A stretch of 64,000 nt of DNA from Ranitomeya imitator (Eukaryota), in contig NC_091291.1 of assembly GCF_032444005.1 (NCBI RefSeq), forward strand, positions 19,158,001-19,222,000. The letters are read 5' to 3'. Positions 8,810 to 55,714 of this stretch are shown here, one piece after another. The position numbers and the translations under genes were made by a program. Position 1 is the stretch's first letter. The number at the start of each line of letters is the position of its first letter. The notes under the pieces are model-generated. The model was given only the letters and a program-made list of their open reading frames with translations. It was not told where the DNA came from and did not search any database.

Positions 8810-10043
8810 TTAGGTAATCAAAAAGGACTCAACGGTACAGACAACAGTGGTTAGATAATCGCATAATCATTTCCATGGTGAACAAAAACCCTCTCACAAC
8901 ATTCAGCTAAAGGTACCGTCACACTAGACGATATCGCTAGCGATCCGTGACGTTGCAGCGTCCTGGCTAGCGATATCGTCCAGTGTGACACGCAGCAGCG
9001 ATCAGGCCCCTGCTGTGATGTCGCTGGTCGGGGAAGAAAGTCCAGAACTTTATTTGGTCGCTGGACTCCCCGCAGACATCGCTGAATCGGCGTGTGTGAC
9101 ACCGATTCAGCGATGTCTTCACTGGTAACCAGGGTAAACATCGGGTTACTAAGCGCAGGGCCGCGCTTAGTAACCCGATGTTTACCCTGGTTACCAGCGT
9201 AAAAAAACAAACAGTACATACTTACATTCAGCTGTCTGTCCCTTGCCGTCTGCTTCCTGCACTGACTGCTGGCCGTAAAGTGAAAGTGAAAGCACAGGAC
9301 AGCGGTGAGTCACACGTGGCTGTGCTCTGCTTTCACTTTACGGCCAGCAGTCAGTGCAGGAAGCAGACGGCAAGGGACAGACAGCTGAATGTAAGTATGT
9401 ATAACCACAGAGAAAAATGGAGTTCCATACACATATATAAAAATAGTAAACTTTATTGAAAACATATGAAAAAACATACAACAATATAAATGAAGAAAGG
9501 ACAGAAAACCTAGTGGGAAACAAATAAAGCCTCGGCACAAAAATATCGGTACAAAGTATGTACTGCTAAGAAATAATTATATGGCACTCAATAAGTCAAT
9601 AATTATATGGTAATTATATGGCACTCAATAAGTCAGCGTTATAGATATCAAGGACATCATTGGATGCAAAACATGCATCCACAGAATGAATCAAGGTACC
9701 AATGGAAAATCACTGAGTGCTGGCATAAAAATGTGTGTTTAAAGTAACTGTCATAATGACCGACACACAAAAAAGAAACCAAGCAGTACAACTTAATCAG
9801 GAATAGTTTCCTTACCCATAGTGGAAAGACGTAAAGTGCCGAGGTCCCAGGTTGACCCCCCTCATTATGACAGTCACTTTAAACACACATTTTTATGCCA
9901 GCACTCAGTGATTTTCCATTGGTACCTTGATTCATTCTGTGGATGCATGTTTTGCATCCAATGATGTCCTTGATATCTATAACGCTGACTTATTGAGTGC
10001 CATATAATTACCATATAATTATTGACTTATTGAGTGCCATATA

Positions 10044-14700: not shown

Positions 14701-15224
14701 AGAGAGTTGCAATAGCCTAGACGAGAATGAATAACAGTGACATTAGGCATTCTTGATGAGTGAAAGGCAGAATGAAGCTGAGGGTGTGTTAGATTAATGG
14801 AGATTTATAAATGCAGTGCACGAGAATACAGATTGACTCTGGATGACAGGAAGACGCTATGTTCGAACAATTATTGTTTTGTTGTTGAGTTAATAAAGTT
14901 AAAAAGGAAGAACAAAAAGGCTTACAGTGTGGAGACTGATTGTAGATAACGCATCATTCCACAGATCAGATGCTTTTGCCTGGACTGCGTGTACTATTGT
15001 GAAGGAAGAAAATATAAATTTTCATATTTCCATAGTTCATTCTTAATCTACTTAGACTGCTGAATTAAGTCTTTTATGTTTTGTCCTACAGTTGGAAGTA
15101 GATGAGCAAGAGAACATTTACAGTTTTTCTGATTATTCAGTTACGTCATTAACTGTTTTGCACAGCTGTGGGATGAATGCGATGTCACTACTGGTGCTGA
15201 CACTGCAGATGGGATGGGACTTAA

Positions 15225-16272: not shown

Positions 16273-17469
16273 ATGGATTCTTCTATCAACATCATCAGTG
16301 AAGAAGAAGTCCAGAACATTCGGTCGGCTTTACAAGAAGGAGACATCTGTACAGCAACTGAAAGACTCGCGGAATCCCTCAGGGAAATAGAAAATGCCCC
16401 GTTGAACATTGCTATCATGGGTGAGTCAGGAACAGGAAAGTCCACTTTTGTCAATGCCATCCGTGGCATGGGCAATGAAGAAGAAGGCTCAGCCAAAACT
16501 GGTGTGGTAGAGACAACAGAGGTGCCAAGTCCATACAACCATCCTCAGTATCCTAATGTAACTGTTTGGGATCTTCCAGGAACAGGAACTCCAAATTTTG
16601 TGGCAGACGGTTATCTCCAGTCTGTTAAATTCAGTCGTTATGACTTTTTCATCATCTTATCATCGGAACGTTTTAAGCAAAACGACATTGACCTAGCAAA
16701 AGCGATTCAAGCTATGAACAAGAAATTCTACTTTGTGAGATCCAAAGTTGACTCCGACGTGCATGCTTCCATGATCCGAAGGAAGAAGACGTTCAATGAA
16801 GAGAATGCGCTGAATGAAATTAGAAATAACTGCATTCAAAGTCTTATAGAAGGGGGAATCCCACAGCCTCAAGTGTTTCTCCTCTCAGTCCTGGACCTGG
16901 ACAAGTACGACTTCCTCGAAATGCAGGACACTCTAGAAAAGGAACTTCCAGAACACAAGAGACACATATTCCTGATCTCTCTACCCCACATTTCTCTGCC
17001 AGTCCTTGAGAAGAAGCGTCAGGCTTTCAAGAAGGACATATGGAAGTTGGCTCTTCTTTCTGGTGAAGTGGCTATGGTCCCAGTACCAGGTCTGTCTGTG
17101 GCTTGTGATATAGGAATCCTGGTGAAAGCCATGACAAGCTATAAGAATGCATTTGGCTTGGATGAAAACTCTCTGGAAAGGTTGGCTGACAAGTTTGGTA
17201 AAGACGTCAGTGAATTAAAATCAGTGATCAAGTCCCCTTTTGTTTTAAAAGAGATAAATAAAGAGTTTGTCGCCACTTTAATAGCCAGAGGGGCCGCCGG
17301 GGGTCTCATGATAGTTGAGTATGTTGTTAGTAATGTCCCAATGGTAGGTAGCCTGGCAGCAGGGGGCATCTCCTTTGCTACCACTTATTGGATGCTCTAT
17401 GGCTTTCTTAAAGAGATTGCTGAAGATGCAGTGCGTGTTCTTACGAAGGCATTGGAGTCACCCGTTTAG
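16273..17469 (+). CDS. irgc: Immunity-related GTPase (IRG/p47, interferon-inducible GTPase 5 / IRGC-like), 398 aa; 'IRG1', type B
   Basis: Uninterrupted ORF with G1 GESGTGKS, switch I AKTGVVETT, G3 WDLPG, YDFFII, G4 RSKVD, LPEHKRH and C-terminal PVPGLSVACD. A splice acceptor (tttctcttcag, AG 16257-16258) lies 14 nt before the ATG, as expected for an IRG with the whole CDS in one exon. The symbol reflects family and synteny; exact orthology is not tested. Confidence 0.95.
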   Translation: MDSSINIISEEEVQNIRSALQEGDICTATERLAESLREIENAPLNIAIMGESGTGKSTFVNAIRGMGNEEEGSAKTGVVETTEVPSPYNHPQYPNVTVWDLPGTGTPNFVADGYLQSVKFSRYDFFIILSSERFKQNDIDLAKAIQAMNKKFYFVRSKVDSDVHASMIRRKKTFNEENALNEIRNNCIQSLIEGGIPQPQVFLLSVLDLDKYDFLEMQDTLEKELPEHKRHIFLISLPHISLPVLEKKRQAFKKDIWKLALLSGEVAMVPVPGLSVACDIGILVKAMTSYKNAFGLDENSLERLADKFGKDVSELKSVIKSPFVLKEINKEFVATLIARGAAGGLMIVEYVVSNVPMVGSLAAGGISFATTYWMLYGFLKEIAEDAVRVLTKALESPV

Positions 17470-17493
17470 GCATCTTTATCCTATACAATAATA

Positions 17494-19098
<1,605 letters not shown>

Positions 19099-21081
19099 TA
19101 TATAGAAAATACTACTAGACATGGGATACAATGAAAACATCTTTGACAAAATAATTAAAAACTGATTCAATGATTTATAAACGTGAGGCAACAAAGTTTT
19201 ACATTATCTTTGTGTTTGCTATCGTAGATTTAAAGTTGACACCTTCAGTGGAGGGGAATATATATATTTTTCTTACTGTACTTTTTTCACTTTACTTTTG
19301 AGATTCTTTAAAAATGTCGCACTTTGTTATTGCCTTACAGCCAAATTGTCTATTGTTGGACAATTACTCGATCTGACTGAGAATATGTCTCTTATCTGTC
19401 TTTTACTGATCTCCTTTCAGCTGATTTATGACCACATGAAAGATCAGCCGTCCTTCGATGTGGTCTGTGGTCATAAATCAGCGGAGAGGATCTCCGTAAA
19501 AGATGGATAAGAGTTACAACCTCTCATTCACAAGGAGCTCACTGACAGATTCAAAGGTTTGTTTACACAGGACGACCTGGCATAATAAGGCTTGACCAAG
19601 GACCAGGCAGGTCTGAAACATGTTGCCTGCGAGCGCAGCGGATATTTATTTTCTGCCTTTTAATTTTTGTGCTGTTGTGTTCAACCATAATTTGTGCCTT
19701 CATGATGAGGCTTCATGCACACAACCTGGTGATACTTGTATAGGTAAAACTAGTACCGGTGAGATCCATGGTCGGTGTCCGTGTGGCCATGTGCTGCATC
19801 CATGTGTCCATGTGACATCTGTATATCCGCGTGCTGTCCGTGCGCAATCTGCGGGCTGTCCATGTGCAATCAATGTGCTGTCAGTGTGACCCGTATGGAA
19901 TGAAATGCAGCATAAAAATTAAAACGTTTTATGTATCAAAGATGTTCAGAGATAGATAGCGATGAGGAACATGATAGATACATAGAAGAGAAATATATCT
20001 GTGTGCTATATAATCATATAATCAGTGCTTTGTATGTTTCTTTCTCTGTACTTGTTTTTGATTTCTAACTAATTAAATTGCATTAAAAAAACAATCTGTG
20101 TGGACTCCCGTGTAATTTTTATAACCAGCAGAGGGAAAGCTGACCGCTTGTGGCTAATATTAATAATCTGGGAAAGGGGCCTTTAGACCTAAATGTTGCC
20201 AGGATATTAATAATGGCGCACAGCTGTTTGCTTAACCTTTACTGGTTAGTTTATAGGGGTACTCCAAAAAAGTGATGTAGGGTCTCCCTATAAATTCTAA
20301 CCAGGAAAGGCTAAACTGACAGCTGTGGGTTAATATTAATAGCCTGGGAAGGGGTCATGGATATTGTTCCCCCTTCCCAACCTAATAACATCAGCCCTCA
20401 GTAGCCCCAGAAATGGTGCATCAATAAGATGCACCAAATCTGGCAATTATCCTCACTCTTCCCACTTGCCCTGGTGCGGTGACAAGTGGGGTAATAGGGT
20501 TGGGGTTGATGTCAGCCCAGGGATTAGTATGGAGAGGTGTTTATCAGACACCCCCATTAATAACCCCATAGTCATACTACATAGCCAGAAAAAAGACTTT
20601 TAATTGAAATAAAAGACAGCCCACCCTCATTTTCCAATTTATTACATAAAAATTCCTATTGTTCTAATCTCGGAAAGGGGACAATATCCTAAAAAGTTCC
20701 CAGGCTATTAATTACAGCTTACAGCTGTTTTCTTAGCCTCTACTGGTTAATTTACAGGGGACCCCAGAAAAAAATAACGTAGGGTCCTGCGTGTGGCTAG
20801 GGAACTTCAACACAGCTTCCCAAACATGTGATAAACCCCAGTTCATTTATGTTTTAAGGAGGGGGGAGGGGTAATCACTTTTTTCACACAGGGCCCTGTA
20901 GGTTTGGATTTCTTGTCCCCTTAATATTAAAGACCTTTATTTATAAACTAAATTTTGTAGATACTTGTTTTATCTTTGTCTAATATTTACATTTGTCTGG
21001 TGATTGGAAACATTTAATTGTGACAAACATGCAAAATAATAGGAAATCAGGAAGGGGGCAAACACTTTTTCACACAACTGT

Positions 21082-25666: not shown

Positions 25667-28226
25667 TATGTACAGGGGGAGCTGTGAGTCCATCATACTG
25701 AATATAGGGGAAACTGTGGGCCCATCATGCTGTGTGTAAGGGAACTTTTGGACCATCATATAGAACTGTGGGGGACGTTACACTGGGTATAGAGGAGCCG
25801 TGGGCCCATCATATTGTGCATAGAGGAGCTGTGGGGGAATCTCACTGTGTATAGGGAGCTGTACATGGGGGTCTCAGGGGACATTATTACAGCAGGTGCA
25901 GCTGTAGGAACACACATGGCAGCAGTGGCTCCACATTGGAGTATCAGCAGGATTAGGAGTTTGCCTAGGTTGGGAATAGATGGGAACGGTACTGGAAATG
26001 TGTTAAATAAAATATGTCTTTGCTGTAAATTCTGCAGATGAGTCTTGGCTGGAAAAAGTTGTCACTTTAATCTGGGTCAGATTGAAAAGACAAAAAAAGA
26101 GAACCCCATCAGAAAAAACGTCATCTATAACTGTACTGTGATCTCTTACTTGTTCTGCAGGACTGATATCTACCACTATATGGTCACCGTGTGGCCGTGT
26201 TGGTCTTTGTATAGAGATTATTTTCAGTAAAAACACAGTTGCTGAGGTTTCCCTATAATCGCAATTAGGGTGAGCCACCGTAACTGTAAACATACGTAGT
26301 TAACTTAAATGTTTCCTCCCCCCCCCCAAGCTTAACCGTCTCTAGACAATGGAAATGGCATAAGGCCAAGTTTCTCTTTAGAAAATGTCACGTAACTTTC
26401 AATTGTGTAGTATTCACTCTCAAACTGCTTACGGCTTTGTGATAACCGCATGTTGCTGAGGGAGCCAAGTCATTTTTCAAGCTTCGACGTATCAGTGGTA
26501 ATAGTGACAGCTCCTCTACTTTCCTGAAATCCCAAGGAACACCATTACAGGTGAGAGATTCTTCCTTTTTATACTCACTGATGTTTATGGTGGGCAGAGC
26601 AAAGAGGCAAAATTCGGGGGCTCAGAAGCAGGACACCCCTTTGGTTTGTGGTCGTGTATTGGTTGTGATTTGCGATAAGAAAGGGCTGAGACTGATTATA
26701 TAGACACATAGAAGAAGTAACTACGACACCAACCCAACTTTTGTAAGTATAAGTACCATAACTCTACTGAGAAGGTGACTGCTCAAGGTCATCGGTAAAA
26801 ATGGGAAACTCATCTAAGAAACATGAGAAGCAATCGCAAGAGAAGAAGCTTACATCAGGAGTTGGAGAAGGCTTAAAAATATTCTAAAATGTTTTAAGCT
26901 TGCTACTAAGAGTATGATGGCGGCTACTTATATTTGTTAAGGTCAACTATGGTGGATTAGGTGCTCTTAAATATCATGATAATTGTTATAAGGCCACCTG
27001 ACTGACGTATAAAGATCAGCCACACCTTCAGTGGATAATAGAAGGCTCATTTAATGCTTATTGATGGTCCACCTAGAAGTAGAAGGTAGGTGATTGTAAG
27101 AAGCTGAATGTGGAGCTCCATGAGAAAAGGTGGCAAAGATACGTGATGCAGATCCATCTCCATATAAGATGTTACCCCAAAACTCTACAGTAGAGGAGAG
27201 CGAGGGTGATGAAACTTAATTTTGCTCCCCCTACCATGCGCCTGCAGAACAATCGTAAGCACAATTTGGGGAACCAGTTTTCTACTTCTCTCGACTAGTC
27301 ATCCGCCCTCTCTACTGAACCTATAACTTCAACTTTCATAGTACTTTCTCCGACAGAGAACAGTGGAATTGAAAGGTGGACCATGAATTCACTCCTGGGT
27401 CTGACATTAAAGTATAGCATTCCGAAGACCATGGAAAAAAAAGCAGGTTTGTGAATCCCAGGGAGCATGTGGAAAAGGTGATCTGTATTCCCAAATGGTT
27501 GGGTCAGATAACTAGAAGAAAAGCATAATATCTTGGTATTTGGAGGAAAAGTTTAGGAAAGCTGTTAGACCAAGAAGGAGGTCCAATTTTGGGGAGGTAG
27601 AGAAGCTTAAAGGGAACCTGTGTAGCAATTACCTGCCCTATCTGCCAAGGCAGTTAGACATAAAAGGTGGACGGGGTATATGGATAGAGGGCAGGAGAGC
27701 TGCAAGTGCAATGTCCCACCTCAAAGCACTTGAAGCTTGTTTGCATGCGATTTAAAAGTTGGATTTCCCAGAAACTACAAAACGGATTTCTACAATTAAG
27801 GTATGGATTAAATCAGTATGAAAGCAGTTGTATATGTGCCATTGGTTTGAGTTGTAAAATCGGCATATGAATTTTTCTTCAAGCAAAAGCCCAAGTAAAC
27901 ATTAGGGAGATAAAGCAAGAAGGGCAAGGTGCTACTGCCACCAGTAAAAGAAGCAGTCAGCTGATCCAACCTACATGCCACTAAGAGAGGTGGCTCTCTC
28001 TGGAGAAATGCATGAACGAGCATACTGTATGTACACACAAAGGGACTGATGTACACACCAAGGGACCAACGTAAGACAGCCAACTATAAGTACTGTCGTT
28101 GTCGACTTGCCTTACCTCCAGCATTGTCAACAAAAGTGTATTTAAAAGGAACATTGACTCCAGAAAACTCAGAAAGGAACTTATGATGATGTAACGCTTC
28201 ATTAAAAGTGCTGTGCTGGAGAAGTA

Positions 28227-29640
28227 CAGTTAGATCCAGAAATATTTGGATTGTGAAACAAGTTTTGGCATTTTAGCTGTTGATAAAACATATTCAGGAT
28301 ACAGTTATATTATCAATGTGGGCTTAAAGTACAGCCTCGCAGCTTTACTTTGAGGGTATTCACATCCTAATAGGAGTAATAGTTCAGGAATTACAGCTCT
28401 GTAATATGTAGCTCCCTCTTTCAAGGGACCAAAAATAATTATCTCAAAAGCTCATTTATGGGCAGAATTGACTTTTCCCTTTTTAATCCATCATTAATTA
28501 AGCAGGTAAAAGGTCCGGAGCTGATTCCAGGTGTGGCACTTTGCATTTGGAAGCTGTTGCTGTGAACCCACAACATGAGGCCGCAGAAGCTCTCAATGGA
28601 AGAGAAACAGACCATGATTTAGCTGAAAAAAAGAAGAAATCCTTTAGAGAGATAGCAGAAATGTTAGGATTGGCCAAATCAACAATTTGGCACATTATTC
28701 AAAAAAAAAGAGCAAACTGGGGAGCTTACGTAATCAAAATAATCAAATAACTGGAAGTTATGGACAACAGTGGTAGATAATCGCAGAATCCTTTCCATGA
28801 TGAACAAAAACCCCTTCACAACATTCAGCTAAGAATAGAACACTCTCCGGGAAATAGGTGTTTCATTATCTAAGTATCTACCAGATAGAGAAGATTTCAT
28901 GACAGCAAATACAGAGGGCTCACCACAAGGTGCAAACCATTAGTCAGCCTTAAAAAATACAAAGGCCATATTTGACTTTGCCAAAAAAAAACATCTAAAG
29001 AAGCCGCCCAATTCTGCAAAAGCAAACCTAAGATCATTCTGTACCACAATGATTGGAAGAAGGAAGTACGGAGAAGGCTTAGAATGGCTCATGATCCAAA
29101 GCACACCCCATCCTCTATAAAGCATGGAGAAGGCATTATGACGGCATGGGCATGCATGGATTTGAATGGATTTCGAGTGTTTATTGATGATGTGACAAAA
29201 GCAGCCAGATGAATTCTGTGTGTACAGGGTGAAACTTTTGGCTCAAATTCAACAAAATGCAGCATTCATTGGATGGCACTTCACAGTAATGAAGGACAAT
29301 GACCCAAAAGTAAAGGCTGAGTCAATCATCAGATCTCTCCCAAATCAAGCTGCATTTCACAGGCTTAGGACAAAACTTAAGCAAAAAAAACCACAAACAA
29401 ACAACTGAAGCCAACTGCAGCAAAGACTAGCAAAACATCACAAAGGCGGAAACCCAGTGTTTGGTGAAGTCCATGGCTCCCAGACTTCAGGCCGTCATTG
29501 CTTGCAAAGGATTCTCTGCAAAGTATTAAAAATGAATACTTTATTTAGGATAAAGGTAATTTGTCCAATTAATTTTAAGCTCCTAAAATGCAGAGGCTTT
29601 GATGAAAAATGGTTCTAAACGTTTCACGGGATATTTCTGT
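28227..29640 (+). mobile_element. Decayed Tc1 (uninterrupted duplicate of 7540-13275)
   Basis: Same left TIR; ORF fragments KKKKSFREIAEMLGLAKSTIWHIIQKK and FTVMKDNDPK. Gives the empty sites for the insertions in copy 1. Confidence 0.8.
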
Positions 29641-31991
29641 TCTGAACTGCATAACCGCCGCGGGAACGGTGGCGGCACAGGAGGTGAGTATAGGCTGTAA
29701 TATTTTATCAGGGCCAAACATTTTGATCAAGAAGGGGTTGTCCTATAGTGGACAAATCTTTTAATTTGCTAACTAGGGTCTGCACATAACAGCTTAAAGG
29801 GACTCTGTCACCTGAATTTGGAGGGAACAATCTTCAGCCATAGGGGCAGGGTTTTCGGGTGTTTGATTCACCCTTTCCTTACCCGCTGGCTGCATGCTGG
29901 CTGCAATATTGGATTGAAGTTCATTCTCTGTCCTCCATAGTACACGCCTGCGCAAGCAAGTCCATCCATGTGTCTAGCTGGAGTCCAATACTGACACTGT
30001 GGAACACTTCCACCTTGCCAGGGCCATGACCAATAGTTGGCCTCCATATCTCTGTAATGTAATCCCCAACCTTGGGACATTACACCAGTAGGAGCTTTAC
30101 TGAATCACTTTCCATAGTTTAATAGATTCAATTAATAGACTGAGATAAGGTCTGGAAGAAGCAGTCCAGATATGTCAACTGCCATCAGATTTGGTTTTTC
30201 GATTTGAAACTGGAAAAATTAAAAAAATTTTTTAATATTATTCATGATTTAACACATATAAGATTATAAAAACTAATCATTTAGGCCACTCTTTGCGTGG
30301 AGTAAAACGTTACAAAAATTGAGCTGCCAGAAATAAATTATGGGGTGAAAATCATGGTCATAATGATCAATGAGAATAGGAAATGACACAAATCCCAAAA
30401 TATCGGCACAAACTAAAGATATAAGAGGCACAAATTACAGAAGAAAAAAGTACAGAAAAGACAAAAAATAATTATTTCCCTTCTATGTGTTTGAATTTCT
30501 CATTAAGGTCAAAAACTAGTCTGTAGTTAGTGAATGACACTTGTTTATGTGCATGGACGACGATCACTGGTGCAGTTTTGGTGAAATTTACCCTTTGTCA
30601 CATACATTGCTCACATTTAGCTCGGAATGGAGTCTTTGTCTTCCACATTCATGAACTAACGTCAGCCCTCCCTCCGTCACCAATGACAGCCCTATTCTTA
30701 GAAGGCTACCTTCACATAAAGTTATTGCCACAGGTACTGTAGTTTCCACAAAAATTTGCTCTGAATGGTGAGGAATTGTGCTGGTAATATCCATAGAGCC
30801 GGTAAAGTTGATCAAAAACTCTAAACTCACCTGCTGCTTCCATGACTCCTTGGTCCGGTCACAAACCGGTTTCTTAACAACTTGATTTTCTGCAATGATG
30901 TCTTGCTTGTCTCGCGTTGGCTTTGGCCAACAGACACCAATGGGAGGGAAGGTGACGGAGCCATGGAGGCACCAGGAGATACTGTATTAGCGTTCTTTTT
31001 ATTTTTTTAGGTACTTTTTTTCCCCACAGAATTAGATCTAGGAGATTTGAAGCAATTTAAGTTCTTTATGGATTTTTCCTTTTCCATTGAAATTAATGGA
31101 GAAAATCAACATCTGTTACAAAAATCGGAATGAAAGATTTGAAAAATTCACAATGCAAATAGTTATCTTTTCCAAACTATTGAGCTCTTTTTAAAAAAAT
31201 GTCCAGTGGAAATACATCCTATAATTCTGAAGATGTTAGAAGACCTGGGAATCAATAAACATGTCATTAAATCATGTTTCAGGAGGCTATACCCAAATGC
31301 ACTTTCAAAGGGTCTTGGGAGAATCATGGTGGGAGCATAATAAAAAAGGAGTGGTAGTATTGAAAAACAAAATTCTTCCCGAGACCTGTATCTTCCCTTG
31401 ATGCCGGTTCTGTACAGCGCATTTCCTTTGTATTGATGAGATTTGATGCTTTTGTTTATCGCTGCAGATTTTCCATCTGCCAAGCCAGGTTGTAAGTTAG
31501 CAGTTTTTCTGAGATTTTGATTTATTTCCATCAAATTATTTTTATTGAGTTTTTCAAGATTATAAAGCCAAACATTACAATATGGAAATTAACTGGTAAA
31601 GGGAAAAAGTAGGAAAGATTTTTTTTTTTGGGGGGGGAACATTTCTGAGAATTTTTTTACTGTGATTATCTTGACTGTGCACTGTCATGAATGGAGAAAA
31701 TGTAACTCTGCATGCTTCCATAGTTCATTCTAAATCTGCCCAAGCCACTGATGTGTTGTGTGTTGTCATAGAGTCGGCAGTCAATGAGCAAGAGAACATT
31801 TACAGTTACTTTGCCTTTGCAGTGAGAGATGGAAACCCTTTTTATACAGGGGTGGGAAGAATGGGAAATCCTTACTGGTGCTGACACTGCAGATGGGACT
31901 AGAATATGTGACAATACCAGTACAGACTTTAGTGAGTAAAGATCCAGCTTTCACCAATCCTTTTTATTCTTCTTCAGATTAATAACTGATA

Positions 31992-33170
31992 ATGGATTCT
32001 TCTATCAACGTCATGAGTGACGAAGAAGTCCAAAACATTCGGTCCGCTTTAGAAGAAGGAGACCTCTGTACAGCAACTGAAAGACTTGGCAATTCGCTCA
32101 GGGAAATAGAAAATGCTCCGTTGAACATTGCTATCATGGGAGAGTCAGGAACAGGAAAGTCCACTTTTGTCAATGTCATCCGTGAGATGGACGATGAAGA
32201 AGAAGGGTCGGCCAAAACTGGTGTTGTGGAGACAACAATGAAGCCAACTCCATACAACCATCCACAGTATCCTGATGTAATTTTTTGGGATCTTCCAGGA
32301 ATAGGAACTCCTGATTTTGCGGCTGATATTTATCTTCAGTCTGTTGAATTTAGTTGTTATGACTTTTTCATCATTTTATCATCAGAACGTTTTAAGAAAA
32401 ATGACATTGACCTAGCGAAGGCGATTCAAGCTATGCACAAGAAATTCTACTTTGTGAGATCCAAAGTTGACTCTGACGTGCATGCTTCTATGATCCGAAG
32501 GAAAAAGTCGTTCAATGAAGAGAATGTGCTCAATGAAATTAGAAGTAACTGCATTCAAAGTCTTAAAGATGGAGGAATCACAGAGCCCAAAGTGTTTCTC
32601 CTCTCACTACTGGAGCTGGAAAAGTACGACTTTCAGAAAATGCAGGAAACACTTGAAAAAGAGCTTCCAGAACACAAAAGACACATATTCCTGATGTGTA
32701 TACCCAACATTTCTCTACCAGTCCTTGAGAAGAAGCGTCAGGCTCTCAGGAAGGACGTATGGAAGTGGGCCTTATGTTCTTATGCAGCGCCTGTATTCTC
32801 AGTCCTGTCTGTACCTTCTGGTGCACAAATCCTGATGACAGTAATGATAGGCTACCAGAAAGCTTTTGGCTTGGATGAAAACTCTCTGAAAAAGTTGGCA
32901 GATAAGTTTAGTAAAGACGTTAGTGAATTAAGATCTGTGATTAAGTCCCCTATAGTCATAGAAGAGATAAATGAAGAGATTGTCAACACTTTACTAGAGA
33001 CATATGCCAGTGATAATGCTATAGATCAGTATCTTCGCATATTGCTATGTAATCTAGAATCAGTGGCCATCCCCTTTGGTACCGCTTACCAGACGCTCTG
33101 CGACTTCCTTAATAAGATTGCAGAGGATGCTGAGCGTGTTCTTATGAAGGCATTAGAGTCGCCCCTCTAG
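31992..33170 (+). CDS. irgc: Immunity-related GTPase (IRGC-like), 392 aa; 'IRG2', tandem paralog of IRG1 with divergent C-terminal half
   Basis: Same GESGTGKS / WDLPG / RSKVD motifs. N-terminal 250 aa visibly highly similar to 16273-17469. Acceptor tcttcttcag (AG 31976-31977) sits at the same spacing before the ATG. Confidence 0.95.
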   Translation: MDSSINVMSDEEVQNIRSALEEGDLCTATERLGNSLREIENAPLNIAIMGESGTGKSTFVNVIREMDDEEEGSAKTGVVETTMKPTPYNHPQYPDVIFWDLPGIGTPDFAADIYLQSVEFSCYDFFIILSSERFKKNDIDLAKAIQAMHKKFYFVRSKVDSDVHASMIRRKKSFNEENVLNEIRSNCIQSLKDGGITEPKVFLLSLLELEKYDFQKMQETLEKELPEHKRHIFLMCIPNISLPVLEKKRQALRKDVWKWALCSYAAPVFSVLSVPSGAQILMTVMIGYQKAFGLDENSLKKLADKFSKDVSELRSVIKSPIVIEEINEEIVNTLLETYASDNAIDQYLRILLCNLESVAIPFGTAYQTLCDFLNKIAEDAERVLMKALESPL

Positions 33171-34341
33171 GCATTTTTCTCCAACACAACAAATCATAGA
33201 AAAAGCTCCCAGATATGGCATATAATGAAAAACTAAAATTAAGGAATTAAGAACTGATTCAACAATTCATATAATTGAGCCAATAAAGTTTGTACAATAT
33301 CTACGTGTTTGCAATGTGCATTTGATTTTATTTTTGCGCACAAAAACATCCACCGCGCACAAAACAACACGGGCCCTGAACATGAACCAAGGAGGACCCC
33401 AAGAGAAAACCGGCAGTGTGAGTAAGGACTGTCATAGATATGGAGCCTCAAGACCAGGCTGTAGTATGACATAGGGGGATGAACTGAAAGGGATGTGGAA
33501 AGAAAAAATGAAGGAAATAACTAGACTTATTCCAACATGTCACTCAGTCCATTTAAGAATAAACTGTGTAATCTGTAAATCCGCAAAGTCTCTTTAGAAT
33601 TAGGAACATTTTTTATTGAGAGAACAACTGGGACCTGCTCTAGGGGGTGTGATGAACCCGCACCTCACCAACCCACCTGATGTCACTATTACATCAGAGG
33701 GATCATGCAGTAGGGTCTCCCCACTTTCACCAGTGTGATTTTCCACACCTGTAAGGTCAGCTTCACACAGTTTTACTGAGACACCCCCTGTCCACATGGA
33801 TCATTGAGCACAGAGAATGAGGGGATGTGTCCTACGCAGCCGATGACGTGCAATCACACTTGCTAACAACCCTGACAGGCTGAGAGGCCCTTTCATTAGC
33901 ACCAGTGAAATAGAGCCTTGCCAGCCCGATAGGACTGCCACCAGTTCCTCATTAGATATAAGTCCAGTCTGTCAATTTGATTTTATTGGGCCAGAAAGCA
34001 GCCCGATAGCATGGGAAGTTAAAACCGAGAATACGGATGTGTGCATTCATGAATCGAGATAAAAGAGCAGCCCAATGTTAAATTATATATTTAATTGCCT
34101 TAAGGGCACACTAGATAAAACTCTACATACACAATGGTTAATGATCCATTTTTGTTTTCATTATTATTTACATTAAAACAGCCTACCTATTCAAGTTGGA
34201 AATTCTTCTTAAAGGCCACCTGGATCAATTATCTCGGGTTTCTTTTTTATGTAAACATATGTCTAAGTTTTTTTGAATAATTAAAATATTCTTCGGTGGA
34301 GGTGCAGCTTTTCCTTATGCATCTGAACTGGCTGGGAAGTA

Positions 34342-35947
34342 CAGTGGGGCAAAAAAGTATTTAGTCAGTCAGCAATAGTGCAAGTTCCACCACTTAAAAA
34401 GATGAGAGGCGTCTGTAATTTACATCATAGTTAGACCTCAACTATGGGAGACAAACTGAGAAAAAAAAATCCAGAAAATCACATTGTCTGTTTTTTTAAC
34501 ATTTCATTTGCATATTATGGTGGAAAATAAGTATTTGGTCAGAAACAAAATTTCATCTCAATACTTTGTAATATATCCTTTGTTGGCAATGACAGAGGTC
34601 AAACGTTTTCTGTAAGTCTTCACAAGGTTGCCACACACTGTTGTTGGTATGTTGGCCCATTCCTCCATGCAGATCTCCTCTAGAGCAGTGATGTTTTTGG
34701 CTTTTTGCTTGGCAACACGGACTTTCAACTCCCTCCAAAGGTTTTCTATAGGGTTGAGATCTGGAGACTGACTAGGCCACTCCAGGACCTTGAAATGCTT
34801 CTTACGAAGCCACTCCTTCGTTGCCCTGGCGGTGTGCTTTGGATCATTGTCATGTTGAAAGACCCAGCCATGTTTCATCTTCAATGCCCTTGCTGATGGA
34901 AGGAGGTTTGCACTCAAAATCTCACGATACATGGCCCCATTCATTCTTTCATGTACCCGGATCAGTCGTCCTGGCCCCTTTGCAGAGAAACAGCCCCAAA
35001 GCATGATGTTTCCACCACCATGCTTTACAGTAGGTATGGTGTTTGATGGATGCAACTCAGTATTCTTTTTCCTCCAAACACGACAAGTTGTGTTTCTACC
35101 AAACAGTTCCAGTTTGGTTTCATCAGACCATAGGACATTCTCCCAAAACTCCTCTGGATCATCCAAATGCTCTCTAGCAAACTTCAGACGGGCCCGGACA
35201 TGTACTGGCTTAAGCATTGGGACACGTCTGGCACTGCAGGATCTGAGTCCATGGTGGCGTAGTGTGTTACTTATGGTAGGCCTTGTTACATTGGTCCCAG
35301 CTCTCTGCAGTTCATTCACTAGGTCCCCCCGCGTGGTTCTGGGATTTTTGCTCACCGTTCTTGTGATCATTCTGACCCCACGGGGTGGGATTTTGCGTGG
35401 AGCCCCAGATCGAGGGAGATTATCAGTGGTCTTGTATGTCTTCCATTTTCTAATTATTGCTCCCACTGTTGATTTCTTCATTCCAAGCTGGTTGGCTATT
35501 GCAGATTCAGTCTTCCCAGCCTGGTGCAGGGCTACAATTTTGTTTCTGGTGTCCTTTGACAGCTCTTTGGTCTTCACCATAGTGGAGTTTGGAGTCAGAC
35601 TGTTTGAGGGTGTGCACAGGTGTCTTTTTATACTGATAACAAGTTTAAACAGGTGCCATTACTACAGGTAATGAGTGGAGGAAAGAGAAGACTCTTAAAG
35701 AAGAAGTTACAGGTCTGTGAGAGCCAGAAATCTTGATTGTTTGTTTCTGACCAAATACTTATTTTCCACCATAATATGCAAAAAAAATGATAAAAAAACA
35801 GACAATGTGATTTTCTGGATTTTTTTTTCTCAGTTTGTCTCCCATAGTTGAGGTCTACCTATGATGTAAATTACAGACGCCTCTCATCTTTTTAAGTGGT
35901 GGAACTTGCACTATTGCTGACTGACTAAATACTTTTTTGCCCCACTG
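34342..35947 (-). mobile_element. Full-length Tc1/mariner element (IR/DR type) with intact transposase
   Basis: About 200-bp TIRs starting CAGTGGGGCAAAAAAGTATTTAGTCAGTC; TA duplications at 34340-34341 and 35948-35949; intact ORF at 34558-35580. Confidence 0.95.
34558..35580 (-). CDS. Tc1 DD34E transposase, 340 aa, apparently intact
   Basis: Paired-like HTH N-terminus, GAPRK linker, [20 protein letters not shown] and [15 protein letters not shown] motifs; no stops. Confidence 0.93.
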
Positions 35948-38229
35948 TATATTCTATTTCAATTTGTGGAAAAGTGCACTGTAATAGTCTATGTGCTATT
36001 GCCATCTACGAGTTTGAAATGTGTTCTGCTCCAAATCTATTGATCTGAAAGACATACCGTAATTCAAGATCCAAGAAGACCATATTGTCTTTGGCAATGT
36101 GAGCTGTAAATGATAAATCCCATGTGTTCTTCTAGAGTTGTTCTACAAAAGAGGTTGCCACATATTCTGTGCCAGACTCAATGATAAATAAGTCGTCGAT
36201 ATATCAAGGGTTATATTTAATATGCCTGACATGGGAACTAGACAAGACTGACGACGGGGACTCGAAACTCTCCATAAACGAATTTGCGGAACCTGGGATG
36301 ACTCGAGTACCCATTGTCGTGCCAAGTCACTGCAGGTAAAGCGCATCCCTAAAATAGAATAGGTTATGCTCCAGGACGAATTTTGACCCGCTCAGGAGTG
36401 GCCACTGTTCAGATTGGATAGTCAGATTGGTGGAGACTCAACATGCGGCATCTCATGGGGGAATAACTCGGTCCATACTCCGACCACTGGAGATGGAGCT
36501 ATAGAAACAGCCGAGACTGACTGGCACCAAAGGTAGGGGGCATGGTCAGATGATCGAGAAGTCATTGCATCTACCCACTTCAGTACCATTATTGCCCTTT
36601 ACCTGCACTTTACACTTTTAATAGTTGGCAGGATGGATGATAATAAACAGCAGCGCTTGAAAATTCCAGTAGGAGCTTCACTGAATAACATTACAAAGTT
36701 TAATAGATCCAATTTGCTGATGAAAGACCAGCGAGAAAAATGTCCAGGAGTCTCCCAAAAAGCGAGAACACCGCCTAGAATCCTGAAGGTGTTGGAAAAC
36801 ACCGGGGACCCTGAAATCCTCCTAAACTTTAAGAAATGCAGGTTCCAGGAGGCCTTGGCCATACCCACATGCAGTATCAAGAGGTGCGGGAAAGTAATGT
36901 TGGGGACATGATCAAAAAAGGCATAAATAGAAAAAAAAAATTCTGTCCGAGTTTTCTATCCTCCTTTGCTGTCGATTCTGCACAACATATTTCTCGTGTG
37001 TAAATGAGATGTGTTCAAATCACATTCATTTTGGTGCTACTGAAAATCTCTACCGGTTTACTACCGCAAAGCAGGGCATAAAATCCGCAGCTTTTTTTCT
37101 TTTTATATTTTTAAAAATTGGGTTTAAAGAAAATTTATGAAGCGTTTGGCTCTTAAAGGCTTTGTGTTTCTGTGAACATTCAACTTTAATGCGGTCTTAA
37201 ATTAAGAGATGCTCGGAAAAAAAGTTAAAATGAAAGAATAACAAATGCTATCATCATTGAATCTGAATGATCTGATTGATGGACTCTCTGAACTCCCTCT
37301 GCAGCAAGCACTAGACAGTGCAATACCCAGACTATAGAATGTAAATGGTGTAACATTTTAAATGAAACCCAACTGCAAAAATTATTGTTAGCTCCAAATA
37401 CATTTTGCTGGTGATTTCTGCAGAGTCTGAACAAAGGATCAAAGACTCTAAACTCACTTGTGGGTGTTTCCATGACTTCATTGCCCGGTTCCTTACAGGT
37501 TTCTGTACAACCCGCCATGAAAGACAAAGATCTTTATATTTATTTTGCTAAGGTTTTTTTTCAGGGCTCACACATTTTGCTTTCGATCTAATGGAAATTC
37601 GAAGCAATTGAAGTTAGTTGTGGATTTCTTTTCTATTCAATAGAGAAACTCATCAACAAACCTGCAACTGATCTGCTACAAGAATCGACTTGTTAAGGTT
37701 TGAAAAATCCACACCATAGATCAAATATCGCCATACTTATCAATTCTTTCAGACTGATTGGAATAATGGGAGACATTCCAAACTCCTGGAGGAGTTGGAA
37801 AACTCTCTTGAGAATGACAAATTTTCCCGGAAAGGAAGTTTCAGGAGGCTTTGATTTTTGTCCAAATGCACTTTCAAGAGGTGTTGATAAGAAATGTAGG
37901 GCTCAACTAAAGTTGCACATAAATATCACAAGGGCCTATTAATCAAAAAAGGCGAGGGGGATGCAACAGGTATTACGAGTTTTGCAGGGTTCTCTGCAAA
38001 AGGATTATTGTTGGGTTTGCAAATCTTTTAGCTCAGTTATATTGAAAACATTTCCTGCTCGAGATCCTCATTCTTCCGGCTGCCAATTCTTTAAAGTTAT
38101 CAGGCACAAAACATTTCCGCTACTGTAAATCACTGCAGAATTTCCACAAAGAAAAGACAGAGAAAATCTGCAGCAGCTTTAGGACAAGGAGGGGCGAAGC
38201 AGAGCAAGATCCTGGATGCAGTTTAGTTG

Positions 38230-38476
38230 GGTGGAAGTGGAAAGAGAAACCTCAGACGTGGTCTCCAAGTTATGATGTTTACACATTTTTCATCCTTTTT
38301 GATCCGGCCTAGATTTGTAGTCTGTCCTGCAATCAGCAGTTTCAGTGCTACAGCACATCCTCTCCCGCCCAGTGACGTCTCCTCTTTCAGTTTCTACAAT
38401 TCACATTATGTACAAGCACCTCCCTATGACGTCACATCTATAGCTTGATAAGTAGGAAGAAAGAGCAGAGAGCAAG
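38230..38476 (+). promoter_or_regulatory. Candidate interferon-responsive promoter and non-coding exon 1 of IRG3
   Basis: ISRE-like GGAAAGAGAAACC 38239-38251 and TTTCAGTTTC 38385-38394; GC box 38362-38370; TGACGTCT 38373-38380; perfect CRE TGACGTCA 38427-38434; donor CAAG|GTATGT at 38477 that could pair with the acceptor at 42314. Confidence 0.55.
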
Positions 38477-41400
38477 GTATGTAAGATCTCATTATCAAGA
38501 GGATCTGTCTATGGATGGGGAAAAAGGGAGAAGAATCGGGGTATAAAAAGCAAGCAACTCCAATGTGCATGGTCATAGATTAACACACTTCTCCGACATT
38601 CTGCACGATCAGTTTCACTGATTATCACTTTGCTGTTGCAGATACGTTGTGACTGACAACAAGAAAAATTCCACTTTATATTTTTGCATTATCGTTTTTC
38701 AAAGTGTCCAGAAATGAGAGCATTATAGAATTGGATATTTTAGTGGTTGCCCCGAGAACAGCTTTAAAACGTTATACACAAGTCTGAAATGGTAGCTACA
38801 ATTCTAAGAATGAGCTGAAGCTACAGAGATGTGGCTGTGTATGATCGACCAGGATAGTACCATGTGTGGCACAACATCTGACTGCCAGTATGGTCACTTT
38901 GAGAAAATCGCACTAAATTCAACCCAGTTAGAGGTTTGATAGCAAGTTGCACTTGACTTCGCCTCTATACGTTGCTACTAGTGATGAGTAGAGATGGGCG
39001 AACTTGAACAGTAAAGCTTGGCATCCGTATCGAACATCTACTGTTCAGGCACAGATATCAAAGGCGTTCCCCCCCCCCAACTCCGAGTGTTTCTAATGCT
39101 ATCATGTGCATGACAACACGGCAAACACTGCTTCTGATCGGCGGTAAGATCATTACCGTCGGTCAGACAGCCGCAGTTCCCAACCTGTCGAATGAGAGCG
39201 AAAGACCGCAGCTGTCACTGGCATCAGATGATGGGACTACTCCCTCCATCATCCTACACTTGCTGCCGCTAATAACAGATAGAGCAGGTAGCGGCTGATG
39301 GGAGTATTAATCAGCCAGGACCTGTGCTCTAAATAAATTAAAGAAAAATGACTTGGGTTCCCCTGTATTTTTTGATAACCAGCCAGGCAAAACTGACAGC
39401 TGCGGGAAGCAACCCTCAGCTGTCAGCGTTACCAAGGCTGGTTATCAAAAAGAGGGTTCCCCACATTGTTTTTTTTAAAATAAATAAAAACAAAAAAAGT
39501 GTGGAGGTTCCCTTCATTTTTGACAAGCAGCCAAGCTAAAACAAGCATCTGAGGGCTGGTATTCTCAGGATGATAAAGGTCCATGTATATTGGTCCGCCC
39601 TTCCCTAAAAACAGAAGCCCGCAGCCGCCCCAGAAAAGGCATATTAGATGTGCCAATTCTGGCTCTTTGCCCGACTCTTCCCACTTGCCCTGTAGCGGTG
39701 GCAAGTGGAGCTCATATTTGTGGGGATGATATCACATTTGTTTTGTCCAGTGACATGAAGCCCATGAATTAGTAATGTAGAGGTGCATGTAAGACACCTA
39801 TCAGTTACTAATCCTATAGTGGTATTGTAAATAGACACAGACAAAATAAAGTCTCTTGAGGTACCGTCACACTGAACGATATCGCTAGCGATCCGTGACG
39901 TTGCAGCGTCCTGGCTAGCGATATCGTTCAGTTTCACAGGCAGCAGCGATCTGGATCCTGCTGTGCCATCGCTGGTCAGCGCAGAAAGTCCAGAACTTTA
40001 TTTCGTCGCTGGACCTTCTGCAGACATCGCTGAATTGGCATGTGTGACGCCGATTCAGCGATGTCTTCACTGGTAACCAGGGTAAACATCGGGTTACTAA
40101 GCGCAGGGCCGTGCTTAGTAACCCGATGTTTACCATGGTTACCAGCATAAACATCGGGTTACTAAGCGCAGGGCCACGCTTAGTAACCCGATGTTTACCC
40201 TGGTTACCAGCGTAAACGTAAAAAAAAAAAACCACTACATACTTACATTCCGTGTCTGTCCCCCGGCGCTGTGCTTCCCTGCACTGTCAGCGCCGGCCAG
40301 CCGTAAAGCAGATTACAGTGGTGACGTCACCGCTGTGCTTTCCGGCTGGCGCTCACTGTCAGTGCAGAGAAGCAGAGCGCTGGGGGACAGACACGGAATG
40401 TAAGTATGTAGTGTTTTTTTTTTTTTACGTTTACAGAGATGTAGATCTGTGTGTTGTCAACATAGAGATGATACTGAAAACTGTGAGATTCTATGAGCTG
40501 TCCCAGGCTGTCTTAGGTTTGTCCCACACGTCCAGATAATTCCGGTACCGGAATTATCCGTGTCCGTGTGCTTACGTAGCACATCAGTGTGGCACACGTG
40601 CGGCAGCCGTGTGCCGACTGAGGACCACACGGACCGTGCAGGAGGCAGCGCTACAGTTAAGTGCTGTCCCCTGCGTGCGGTGCTGAAGCCGGTATTCATC
40701 TCTTCCTCCCAGCAGCGTTCGCTGGAGAGAAGGAATGAATAATCAATTTTTTTTTCTTTCTCCTTAAAAATAAAGTTTGTGCGTCCCCTCCCGCCTCCCA
40801 TCCCCTGTGCGCCCCCCACTTGCCAGGAAATACTCACCGACACCCAGCTCCAGCGATGTCTCCTCTCAGCGCCGGCAGCAGGCCCTGTGTGAGCGGTCAC
40901 GTGGTCCCGCTCATTACAGTGAGGAATATGCGCATATTCCTCACTGTAATGAGCGGGACCACGTGACCGCTCACACAGCACAGGCTGCAGCTGCTGAGAG
41001 GAGACATCGCTGGAGCTGGGTGTCGGTGAGTATTTCCTGGCAAGTGGGTCCGTGAAATCATGCTGACATGTGCAGAGACACATTGATTTTAATGTGTCTA
41101 CATGAGTCAGTCTCTCCGGTACGTGAGGAAACTGTCACCTCACATACCGGAGCCACTGACGTGTGAAACCGGCCTTATGGATGCCTCTCCATTACTAAGC
41201 TGAGGGCTTGATGTCATCGAACAATGCAAAGGTAACATTAACCCCACAAATATGAACCCCACTTGCGACCGCTACAGGGCAATTCGGAAGAGCTGGGCAA
41301 AGAGCCAGAATTGGCACATCTACTAGATATGACTTTTCTGGGCGGCTGTGATCTGCTGTTTTTAGGCTGGGGGGGCAATAACCATGGGCCCTTACCAGAC

Positions 41401-42338: not shown

Positions 42339-43568
42339 ATGGATTCCCAATTTATAGTTCCTGAAAATGAACTGCAGGAGATGAAGAACTTCTTTGAAAA
42401 TAGAGATCTTGCAGAAGCTGTAGAAAGTGTGAAGAGATGCCTGGAAGACATTGACCAAGTCACGTTGAATGTTGCCGTAACTGGAGAATCGGGATCAGGA
42501 AAGTCAACTTTTATCAACGTAATCCGAGGCCTTGGCGATGAGGAAGAAGATTCTGCCAAGACAGGCGTGGTCGAGACAACCACAGTCCCATCACCTTATT
42601 TACACCCGCATCACAAAAACGTGAAATACTGGGACCTTCCCGGGATCGGAAGTCCTGTATTTAATCCGATGGATTATCTGCAATTGGTGAAGTTTCACCA
42701 ATATGATTTTTTTCTGATCATCACAACCGAACGCTTCAGAGAATGTCACATCCTGTTAGCACAAGCCATCAAGTCCATGGGGAAGAAGTTCTACTTTCTG
42801 AGATCCAAAATAGACTCGGCAATAAAAGGATGTCGACGAAGAAGGACAAACTACTGCAAGGATGAAGATCTACTGAAGAAAATCCACGATGACTGCGTAA
42901 ATGGTCTCCGAGCTGGAGGTATCGAGAACCCTCGAGTGTTTCTAATTTCCAGTCTAGAACCTGAAAAGTATGACTTCTACTTGATCCAGAAAACGCTAGA
43001 GGACGAACTTCCGAGTCACAAGAGACATGTATTTCTTTTGTCTCAGCCCAATTTTTTCCACCAGGCCGTGGAGAAGAAGAAAAAGGTCTTTCTATCGCAA
43101 ATCTGGAAATGGGCCATCGTCTCCGCTATGAACGTTGTGACGTCACAAAGGTCGGGTGCGAGTAGTATGTCGTGTGTTCCGTATTTATCAGCCAATGGTG
43201 ACCTCACCCTCATGGTCAATGTTTTGGAAGAGTACAAGAAAGCTTTCGGACTGGACGCGAGATCCCTTAAAATGCTATCGGATACCTTTGGGAGAGATCT
43301 CGAAACTTTGAGATCAATGATCAGAACCACAACGGCTTTGGAGGAGATAACTCCCGAATTGGTTTTCCATCACCTAAAGAGTCAGGGTCTGACGGACATG
43401 GGTCGTATAGTGACAGCATGTGTAAATCAGATTGTTCCGCAAATTGGCACATTGGCAAGTGGAGGAGTTGCCTTCGGGACGACTTACTGGATACTAAGCA
43501 GCTTCTTATCAGCTATGGCAGAAGATGCTACCAAGGTGCTGACGATGGCATTAGCGACTTCTGACTAA
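42339..43568 (+). CDS. irgc: Immunity-related GTPase (IRGC-like), 409 aa; 'IRG3', type A, adjacent to smg9
   Basis: G1 GESGSGKS, AKTGVVETT, WDLPG, G4 RSKID, LPSHKRH. Acceptor tctttttccctcag (AG 42313-42314) upstream of the ATG. Convergent with smg9, as human IRGC is with SMG9. Confidence 0.95.
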   Translation: MDSQFIVPENELQEMKNFFENRDLAEAVESVKRCLEDIDQVTLNVAVTGESGSGKSTFINVIRGLGDEEEDSAKTGVVETTTVPSPYLHPHHKNVKYWDLPGIGSPVFNPMDYLQLVKFHQYDFFLIITTERFRECHILLAQAIKSMGKKFYFLRSKIDSAIKGCRRRRTNYCKDEDLLKKIHDDCVNGLRAGGIENPRVFLISSLEPEKYDFYLIQKTLEDELPSHKRHVFLLSQPNFFHQAVEKKKKVFLSQIWKWAIVSAMNVVTSQRSGASSMSCVPYLSANGDLTLMVNVLEEYKKAFGLDARSLKMLSDTFGRDLETLRSMIRTTTALEEITPELVFHHLKSQGLTDMGRIVTACVNQIVPQIGTLASGGVAFGTTYWILSSFLSAMAEDATKVLTMALATSD

Positions 43569-52710: not shown

Positions 52711-52964
52711 GATGGGTTAGTGCAGGGACGGATCCTTCTGCCCGGAGTTTTCTGCTTCAGTAAATGGTATCGGCTTCCTGATTTCTCGCTCTTTCCAAAA
52801 TCGTCATTCGCTGACAGCAAACAGAGATCCTGAAAACAATATTAGTACGGTGGCCGTTACCGAGGAAGCGGGATGCGGGGCCGCCATCGTTGTACAGGGG
52901 AGAGCCCTGCACCGACACCATGGCGGAGGGGGGGCTACCTTCATAGCAGAGGGAAGCCCCGGAA

Positions 52965-55365: not shown

Positions 55366-55714
55366 CAACAAAGTAGTGAGGGGAATAACCGGACGGCGAC
55401 GTTGTAGCGGTGGCAGCCTCAGACGGACAGTCATAGAGGGGCAGCCTCAGACGTTACTTTTCTAGTGGGGGGCAGCCCCGGACGGCAATGTCCTAGCGGG
55501 GGCAGCCTCAGTCCGCACAGTTGTAGTGGGGGCAGCCCGGGCCAGCACCATTGTAAGGGGGGTACTTTTGGACACTGCTCAGCACAGCTACAGAGGGGAA
55601 GGCATTTTCAGGACACACCAGGACAGTCTTCTCCTAGGACAGGAGCACTACACCCCCAGCCCTCCTCCATGGACTCAGTATGTCTCCTCTCCCCGAGACC
55701 CCGCTGTCACTCAC

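Follow-up and report, generated by a model that had tools for sequence, protein, structure and literature searches.

The 64,000-nucleotide stretch of Ranitomeya imitator DNA considered here (contig NC_091291.1; hereafter the window) contains three single-coding-exon genes from the family of immunity-related GTPases, or IRGs (IIGP, PF05049), all on the + strand. These are IRG1 (16273–17469, 398 codons), IRG2 (31992–33170, an open reading frame [ORF] of 392 codons plus stop in a single exon) and IRG3 (42339–43568, 409 codons); tblastn of the window with IRG1 and IRG3 as queries revealed no further IRG relics. Our subject is IRG2, in which amino-acid change relative to IRG1 is concentrated, far beyond chance, in two C-terminal segments that we call patches A and B. 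IRG1, the conservative paralogue, serves as comparator, and IRG3, a distant paralogue (47% identity) which keeps the Gly-rich motif discussed below, as nucleotide outgroup. IRG proteins are textbook agents of cell-autonomous defence in mice; to our knowledge almost nothing is known of those of amphibians, animals heavily burdened by pathogens, both intracellular ones and those of the skin.

IRG2 matches the PF05049 profile with 376.6 bits over residues 9–386 (cut-off 24, E = 1.8e-112), and IRG1 and IRG3 belong to the same profile with 386 and 302 bits, respectively. The solved structures nearest to IRG2 are Irgb10, Irga6 and Irgb6 (E = 1e-96 to 1e-85), and AlphaFold2 (AF2) models (mean predicted local distance difference test score [pLDDT] 72 for IRG1 and 80 for IRG2) display the IRG-type architecture, with G-domain strands and helices at ~44–203 flanked by helices 10–41 and 214–394. 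The sequence G-E-S-G-T-G-K-S occupies residues 50–57 in IRG1 and IRG2, as in every frog protein aligned, and its form G-x4-G-K-S assigns them to the GKS (effector-type) and not the GMS subclass. All three proteins of the window begin M-D-S-S; they lack the Gly2 of myristoylated GKS IRGs and so offer no attachment point for a myristoyl anchor like that of Irga6 and Irgb10. An extended N-terminus of IRG2 is excluded because an in-frame stop lies 9 nt upstream of its ATG. IRG2 is 100% identical to one R. imitator protein. In the NCBI annotation the IRG1-type frog proteins are named IRGC or “interferon-inducible GTPase 5”-like, and the IRG2-type proteins of Phyllobates and R. variabilis “GTPase 1-like.” The best explanation of these data and of the transcripts described below is that the IRG2 gene is expressed and encodes a functional immunity-related GTPase of the GKS type.

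The IRG1 and IRG2 proteins are 72% identical and collinear, free of gaps over their first 268 residues. Patch A (32757–32861, + strand; IRG2 residues 256–290 aligned to IRG1 256–292, the latter encoded at 17038–17148) comprises the end of a long helix, a loop that has lost a P-x-P-G-L-S motif along with two codons, and the next helix. Patch B (32985–33116, + strand; IRG2 332–375 aligned to IRG1 334–381, encoded at 17272–17415) comprises an αK-like helix, a loop and the beginning of the final long helix, from which a Gly-rich hydrophobic motif and four codons are missing. IRG2 is thus six codons shorter than IRG1, 6 nt having gone in patch A and 12 nt in patch B. Pairwise Nei-Gojobori estimates for the two genes, in IRG1 numbering, give dN 0.46, dS 0.31 and omega (dN/dS) 1.47 for patch A and 0.57, 0.40 and 1.41 for patch B. 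The corresponding values are 0.157, 0.317 and 0.50 for the whole gene, 0.088, 0.269 and 0.33 for codons 1–255, 0.104, 0.383 and 0.27 for the conserved linker (32862–32984, + strand; IRG1 293–333, the AFGLDENSL...SVIKSP region), and 0.083, 0.732 and 0.11 for the last 17 codons.

Differences within the patches are nonsynonymous and synonymous in the ratio 68:16, against 62:51 elsewhere (Fisher p = 1.4e-4), and fall on codon positions 1/2/3 at 0.39/0.41/0.28 per codon, against 0.10/0.07/0.19 elsewhere. Two or three positions differ in 21 of the 79 patch codons; the codons with a single difference are nonsynonymous in 34 cases and synonymous in 6, and the multi-hit codons are therefore not the sole source of the signal. 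Since dS is flat along the gene (0.27–0.40, with 0.73 in the last 17 codons) and agrees with the 72–75% identity of the adjacent non-coding flanks, neither a locally raised mutation rate nor a pasted-in foreign segment explains the pattern.

Much of this had been anticipated by an initial annotation made from the sequence alone. Its nearly collinear G domains, its preserved reading frame (open for the full 392 codons) and its excess of amino-acid changes with retained third bases are all confirmed, the excess lying on the IRG2 lineage. The codon changes that it listed in patch A are present (gaa>gca, gtg>gcg, gct>cct twice, tgt>tct and gat>ggt), with gtc>ttc and cca>tca holding under its own gap placement, which is at least as parsimonious as that of MAFFT. 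The in-frame loss of 6 nt follows from the 21 codons at 17059–17121 facing 19 at 32778–32834, and the further loss of 12 nt is real and lies in patch B. Its expectation that dN/dS would exceed 1 proved right for the two patches and for the 19-codon core at 32778–32834 (omega 3.0); over the full interval 32775–33120 that it had marked, omega is 0.99.

We might next consider which paralogue changed. Relatives were compared in an alignment of 14 other hyloid frog IRGs plus IRG3, and in a wider one including salamander proteins. The 14 hyloid proteins, IRG3 and the consensus that includes the salamanders share a V-P-x-P-G-L-S turn in patch A and an I-P-x-L-G-S-L-A-A-G-G-I-S-F-G-T-T-Y-W-M-L segment in patch B. 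IRG1 carries both, and IRG2 has lost both, as the initial annotation had read from PVPGLSVACD and the Gly-rich helix. Among the aligned frog IRGs the two motifs are missing only in IRG2, in a second IRG2-type protein of R. imitator (P0122, XP_069597326.1; 394 residues, from a chromosome-level assembly; 94% identical to IRG2) and in an IRG2-type protein of Phyllobates terribilis (P0002, XP_073511903.1; 85%). These three have in common a two-residue deletion and new conserved blocks, of which L-L-C-N-L, I-P-F-G-T-A-Y-Q and P-S-G are identical in all of them, and a tree built without the patch columns still groups IRG2 with the Phyllobates protein (support 100/99). On this comparison of proteins the patch change is placed on the IRG2 lineage and not on that of IRG1, and the IRG2 lineage would comprise, among the proteins found, only dendrobatid poison frogs.

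Several measures agree in this. Of the sites at which the 14 other hyloid proteins never vary, IRG2 has changed 16 of 27 within the patches and 8 of 160 elsewhere. Branch lengths under the LG (Le and Gascuel) model, patches against the rest, are 0.67 and 0.06 for the IRG2 stem, 0.37 and 0.06 for the R. imitator tip, and 0.03 and 0.05 for the Phyllobates tip. By outgroup comparison 17 patch residues are shared and derived, 12 private to R. imitator, one private to Phyllobates, and 10 new and different in both; outside the patches the private changes are symmetric (9 in R. imitator versus 8 in Phyllobates). An Anomaloglossus protein (P0013), whose C-terminal region is the next closest to the IRG2 clade, bears several of the IRG2 marks, yet keeps both motifs. 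When the C-terminal 138 residues of IRG2 were searched against 5.8 billion proteins no other IRG2-like patch sequence was recovered: members of the IRG2 clade (100% and 79%) were followed at 54% by an ordinary motif-bearing frog IRG.

Three genes from two genera retain the IRG2-type ORF, at 392–394 codons. The two R. imitator copies are identical in patch A (35 of 35 positions) and differ in patch B at 8 of 44 plus a two-residue indel, compared with 15 of 348 elsewhere (Fisher p = 0.002). The stretch which still varies among IRG2-type copies is residues 323–350 (32958–33041, + strand), which holds 11 of the 25 alignment columns that differ between these two. A relative from R. variabilis (P0109, XP_077112423.1) is annotated with 251 residues and departs from IRG sequence after approximately residue 217; its G domain is 90% identical to that of IRG2, the IRG1-type orthologue pair of the same two species being 96% identical. 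The IRG2 subfamily looks dynamic in Ranitomeya, be it by selection or drift.

Two paralogues of a single genome have been diverging for the same length of time, and therefore about half of dS belongs to each lineage. In a three-taxon codon likelihood model with a clock the patches have omega 2.9 on IRG2 and 1.0 on IRG1 (likelihood ratio test against 1, p = 0.005), and the non-patch codons 0.35 and 0.32. For a wider sample we used a home-made hybrid codon model on an 18-taxon tree, in which tips known only as amino acids enter as sets of synonymous codons and 3 of 18 tips have nucleotides. Its branch lengths are the LG lengths of the non-patch columns times one scale factor, with the IRG3 branch free, and ancestral states were judged from branch lengths fitted per partition, from the residues seen in outgroups and from likelihoods in which internal states are summed out. 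Here omega in the patches is 2.42 on the IRG2 clade versus 0.78 in the background (p = 8e-7), while the non-patch columns give 0.42 versus 0.44; outside the patches omega thus lies at 0.32–0.42 on the IRG1 and IRG2 lineages. Branch-site model A in the same framework, in which sites are not selected beforehand, finds omega 3.05 in 9% of sites with the whole IRG2 clade as foreground (p = 0.02); 16 sites reach a posterior above 0.5, and 12 of them are in the patches. With the stem only as foreground omega is 6.4 (p = 0.004) and 14 of 17 such sites are inside the patches. These lineage-aware tests support a rate in the patches of the IRG2 clade above the neutral expectation.

The initial annotation had spoken of diversifying selection. 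In the sense of an ongoing process this is not upheld, as the significant signal is the old stem episode shared with Phyllobates. Divided by branch, under an earlier parameterisation of the IRG3 branch that is conservative for omega, patch omega is 3.7 on the stem, 1.56 on the R. imitator branches (p ~0.06–0.07 against 1) and 0.58 on Phyllobates. The branch-site test with only the R. imitator branches as foreground gives p = 0.43, and the later R. imitator patch rate is indistinguishable from neutral. Nor is there patch variation in four R. imitator transcript data sets, all of which match the window perfectly through both patches.

These steady-state data sets (four runs, four studies) also define the transcript. 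Their IRG2 contigs are confined to ~31975–33264, with none on the 2 kb upstream of the IRG2 exon and none past 33319, and the loose 5' letters of the contigs match 26523–26547 exactly. We assign these letters to an untranslated 5' exon 1 (minimum extent 26474–26550, + strand) which ends in ...CAG before a GT donor at 26551–26552; an identical copy lies upstream of IRG1 at ~5425–5449, and over the 30 letters shown the assignment to IRG2 rests on position. The acceptor AG (31976–31977, + strand) follows a pyrimidine tract and opens exon 2 at 31978, the CAG at the end of exon 1 leading the aligner to extend this exon to 31975. A polyadenylation signal AATAAA is found at 33282–33287 (+ strand), the contigs stopping at 33232–33264. 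The exon 1 letters and the canonical GT..AG intron indicate that the transcripts are spliced. We saw no stops, indels or null alleles in the IRG2 contigs of the four data sets, contrary to the concern that the gene might be unexpressed or carry null alleles; such contigs give no expression level and can miss rare alleles, so that their lack of polymorphism is weak evidence. The only consistent difference is at codon 122 (32355–32357), where the window reads TGT (Cys) and each of the four data sets CGT (Arg). Arg122 is also present in IRG1, the second R. imitator copy and the Phyllobates protein; Cys122 is either an assembly error or an allele private to the animal sequenced.

Two further observations were made on these data. 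A 172-nt contig of run X2 with 10 differences was considered as an IRG2 allele and rejected: at 9 of the 10 variant sites it carries the base of IRG1, which identifies it as an IRG1-type transcript cross-laid on the most conserved stretch of the G domain. Within the IRG2 intron, 29773–29969 shows coverage in the thousands in all four data sets, with many short contigs loose-ended on both sides, and is probably a highly expressed interspersed repeat.

What the patches do may be judged from their position on mouse IRGs. By sequence alignment, which may be off by 1–2 residues for Irgb6, patch A corresponds to the end of αF, the αF-αGa loop and αGa (~Irgb6 271–307, including the membrane-binding loop 277–286), and patch B to αK, the αK-αLa loop and the start of αLa. 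In Irgb6 the αF-αGa loop binds the parasitophorous vacuole membrane and its glycine cluster is essential, with αK residues supporting the loop; the αF-αGa and αK/αK-αLa elements touch each other and form the face that binds lipid and the vacuole membrane (PMC8605323, PMC6925386). In IRGM proteins the αK helix is a membrane-targeting signal (PMC2799677). Because the two Irgb6 elements are in contact, patches A and B are best seen as one surface and may most simply be regarded as one structural unit that changed together. The link between the C-terminal helices and membrane targeting drawn in the initial annotation is thereby strengthened. The AF2 models of IRG1 and IRG2 both show a helix-loop-helix in each patch (in patch A of IRG2, helix 241–269, loop, helix 277–291), with pLDDT below 50 at 341–357 in patch B of IRG2. 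From IRG1 to IRG2 patch B falls from seven glycines to one and from a mean hydropathy of 0.80 to 0.13, rises from two acidic residues (D/E) to five, and has a maximal 11-residue hydrophobic moment of 0.69 in place of 0.36, that is, a more amphipathic helix. One would predict that IRG2 contacts membranes or partners in an altered manner or at a different place; the changed target-membrane or antagonist specificity put forward in the initial annotation stays conjectural.

The explanation we favour, with about an even chance of being correct, is an adaptive burst on the IRG2 stem, an old episode which remodelled both patches. On the stem of the IRG2 lineage, before Ranitomeya and Phyllobates separated, two segments distant in sequence, namely patch A, a loop behind the long central helix, and patch B, the αK-like helix plus the loop that follows, would have been rebuilt by many first- and second-position substitutions and small in-frame deletions, at a rate above the synonymous one. 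Such a rate would indicate episodic positive selection, directional and possibly in part compensatory. The ancient Pro-x-Pro-Gly turn and the Gly/Ala-rich apolar segment would have given way to a more polar, acidic and amphipathic one, the remaining protein staying under purifying selection. Following the burst the Phyllobates copy changed little and the R. imitator copies kept changing, mainly at residues 323–350.

A good deal weighs against this explanation. The boundaries of the patches were set after looking at the data. An unpartitioned three-taxon branch-site test, confined to the nucleotide sequences of the window, is not significant (2ΔlnL 1.0–1.6, p = 0.1–0.3), IRG3 being a poor outgroup because it is saturated at synonymous sites. 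The stronger tests depend on the home-made model with nucleotides at so few tips, and if the stem is really longer than its borrowed length omega would drop. Multi-nucleotide mutations inflate branch-site tests, which matters here given the 21 multi-hit codons; the alignment around the patch B indels is uncertain; and the patches have a background omega of 0.57–0.78, i.e. they are the less constrained part of the protein there too. AF2 confidence is low in the core of patch B in IRG1 and IRG2 alike, and the region may simply be flexible. The truncated R. variabilis protein hints at birth-and-death turnover in the subfamily.

These same points feed the most serious alternative, local relaxation, which we consider possible if rather doubtful. 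After the duplication IRG2 would no longer have needed a membrane-binding face of its own, perhaps as a regulator in solution or as one component of mixed oligomers, and its interface segments would have drifted almost neutrally; omega above 1 is then ascribed to post-hoc windows, multi-nucleotide changes, alignment next to indels and borrowed branch lengths. The omega of 0.99 over 32775–33120 is in keeping with this, as are the non-significant three-taxon test, the near-neutral R. imitator branches (omega 1.56, branch-site p = 0.43), the weak background constraint and low pLDDT of the region, and the truncated relative. Under neutrality, however, ~31–34% of the patch codons would be expected to be altered on the IRG2 path, whereas ~49% are, with six codons deleted in addition, and both the stem-only branch-site test and the partition test reject it. 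Moreover, the new sequence seems to have come under constraint again, to judge from the derived blocks identical in three proteins, from the perfectly conserved patch A of the two R. imitator copies and from the private changes, of which R. imitator has 12 and Phyllobates one.

A mosaic origin is very improbable; here the patches, brought in by gene conversion from a divergent paralogue or left out when IRG1-type genes homogenised the remainder of the gene, would only seem to have evolved fast. The history of the locus is indeed mosaic, far-upstream DNA being 88–90%, coding sequence 82% and proximal flanks 72–75% identical between the two units. Yet the patch dS values (0.31 and 0.40) are no higher than those of the rest (0.27–0.73), third positions are retained, and the failure of the 5.8-billion-protein search with the C-terminal 138 residues to find a donor-like sequence argues against a donor paralogue. 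Equally hard to credit is that IRG2 is a decaying or unexpressed pseudogene with a frame open by chance. The truncated R. variabilis annotation and the private Cys122 of the reference lean that way; against them stand the ORF kept in three genes of two genera, omega of 0.32–0.42 outside the patches, intact G motifs and spliced transcripts in four studies with neither stops nor indels. Compensated frameshifts between two indels, suggested by the presence of indels in both patches, are next to impossible and were rejected as the source of the IRG2 changes, since the gaps are in-frame multiples of three accompanied by point substitutions at positions 1 and 2, and the codon-by-codon alignment holds no out-of-frame stretch of identical nucleotides.

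Beyond the adaptive burst itself one might suggest that the helix at residues 323–350 and its adjoining loops form a contact surface for a frog-pathogen factor or a pathogen-specific membrane, in an arms race continuing in Ranitomeya. Behind this stand the 11 of ~30 positions at which the two R. imitator copies differ there and the truncation of the third copy in R. variabilis; we think it unlikely. If true, it would be the first case of IRG-pathogen co-evolution outside mammals, and located not in the G domain but on the membrane-binding face. Apart from this, the locus offers a natural paired experiment, two near-identical GTPase domains of which one has had only its presumed membrane-binding face replaced, apparently under selection. 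Such a change is unsurprising for an immune gene family and is no new kind of system; the case is ordinary but clean.

The surroundings of the genes deserve some description. The IRG1 and IRG2 duplication units are themselves mosaic. The well-conserved far-upstream part (26000–29800 versus 4849–14133, 88–90%) contains the 5' exon common to both units and, presumably, the promoter; the proximal intron (31677–31898 versus 14989–15214) and 3' flank (33196–33315 versus 19102–19222) are only 72–75% identical, next to 82% for the coding exon. This suggests that the promoter and exon 1 region was homogenised later. Upstream of and inside the shared 5' exon (26360–26550 and 5270–5452) we noted by eye a candidate interferon-stimulated response element (ISRE)-like AGTTTC-TC-TTTA and a gamma-activated site (GAS)-like TTCCTGAAA, neither of which differs between the IRG1 and IRG2 copies. 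Alignment of this region with 38200–38500, upstream of IRG3, is poor. Two Tc1/mariner copies, 98% identical to each other, lie downstream of IRG1 and of IRG2. That at 17492–19101 lies 22 nt past the IRG1 stop codon, interrupts the homologous 3' untranslated region and has a broken transposase frame; that at 34340–35957, in the opposite orientation ~1.2 kb downstream of IRG2, has an intact 340-residue transposase ORF (34558–35580). Long overlapping ORFs on both strands at 52757–55434 (up to 799 residues, no Pfam match) have the look of an artefact of composition or repeats, not of genes. A 327-residue IRG fragment of R. imitator (P0102) is located on the same 1.48-Mb contig as IRG2.

Among amphibian genes, those named IRGC or “interferon-inducible GTPase 5”-like by NCBI form the group whose conservative state is represented by IRG1; we found no literature on selection in amphibian IRGs. 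Among mammalian proteins Irgb6 (Tgtp1/2) is of the same fold family as IRG2 (phmmer E = 4e-85 to PDB 7VES), and both frog patches align to its αF-αGa loop and αK/αK-αLa loop, the elements which differ most in conformation among IRG paralogues and which belong, with Lys275 and Arg371, to its membrane-binding interface (PMC8605323, PMC6925386). The interface Trp3 of Irgb6 is absent from the frog proteins, which start MDSS, and the glycines that Irgb6 uses are lost in IRG2. In mouse Irgm1/2/3 the C-terminal αK helix sets the target membrane (PMC2799677), and patch B of IRG2 is likewise the more amphipathic one in comparison with IRG1; unlike these GMS-type regulators, IRG2 keeps GKS. Mouse Irgb2-b1 is, like IRG2, a tandem-cluster IRG paralogue in which a localised excess of amino-acid change has been read as adaptation, there as recent divergent selection against Toxoplasma ROP5/ROP18 (PMC3810784, PMC6420625). 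Its selected surface is H4/αD of the G domain, with allelic polymorphism within the species (PMC3810784), whereas in IRG2 the G domain is conserved, the signal is one between paralogues and mostly old, and the patches are free of polymorphism in the four data sets. The closest functional analogies to IRG2 are Irgb6's membrane-binding interface and the αK targeting helix of the IRGM proteins, and the closest evolutionary analogy is Irgb2-b1.

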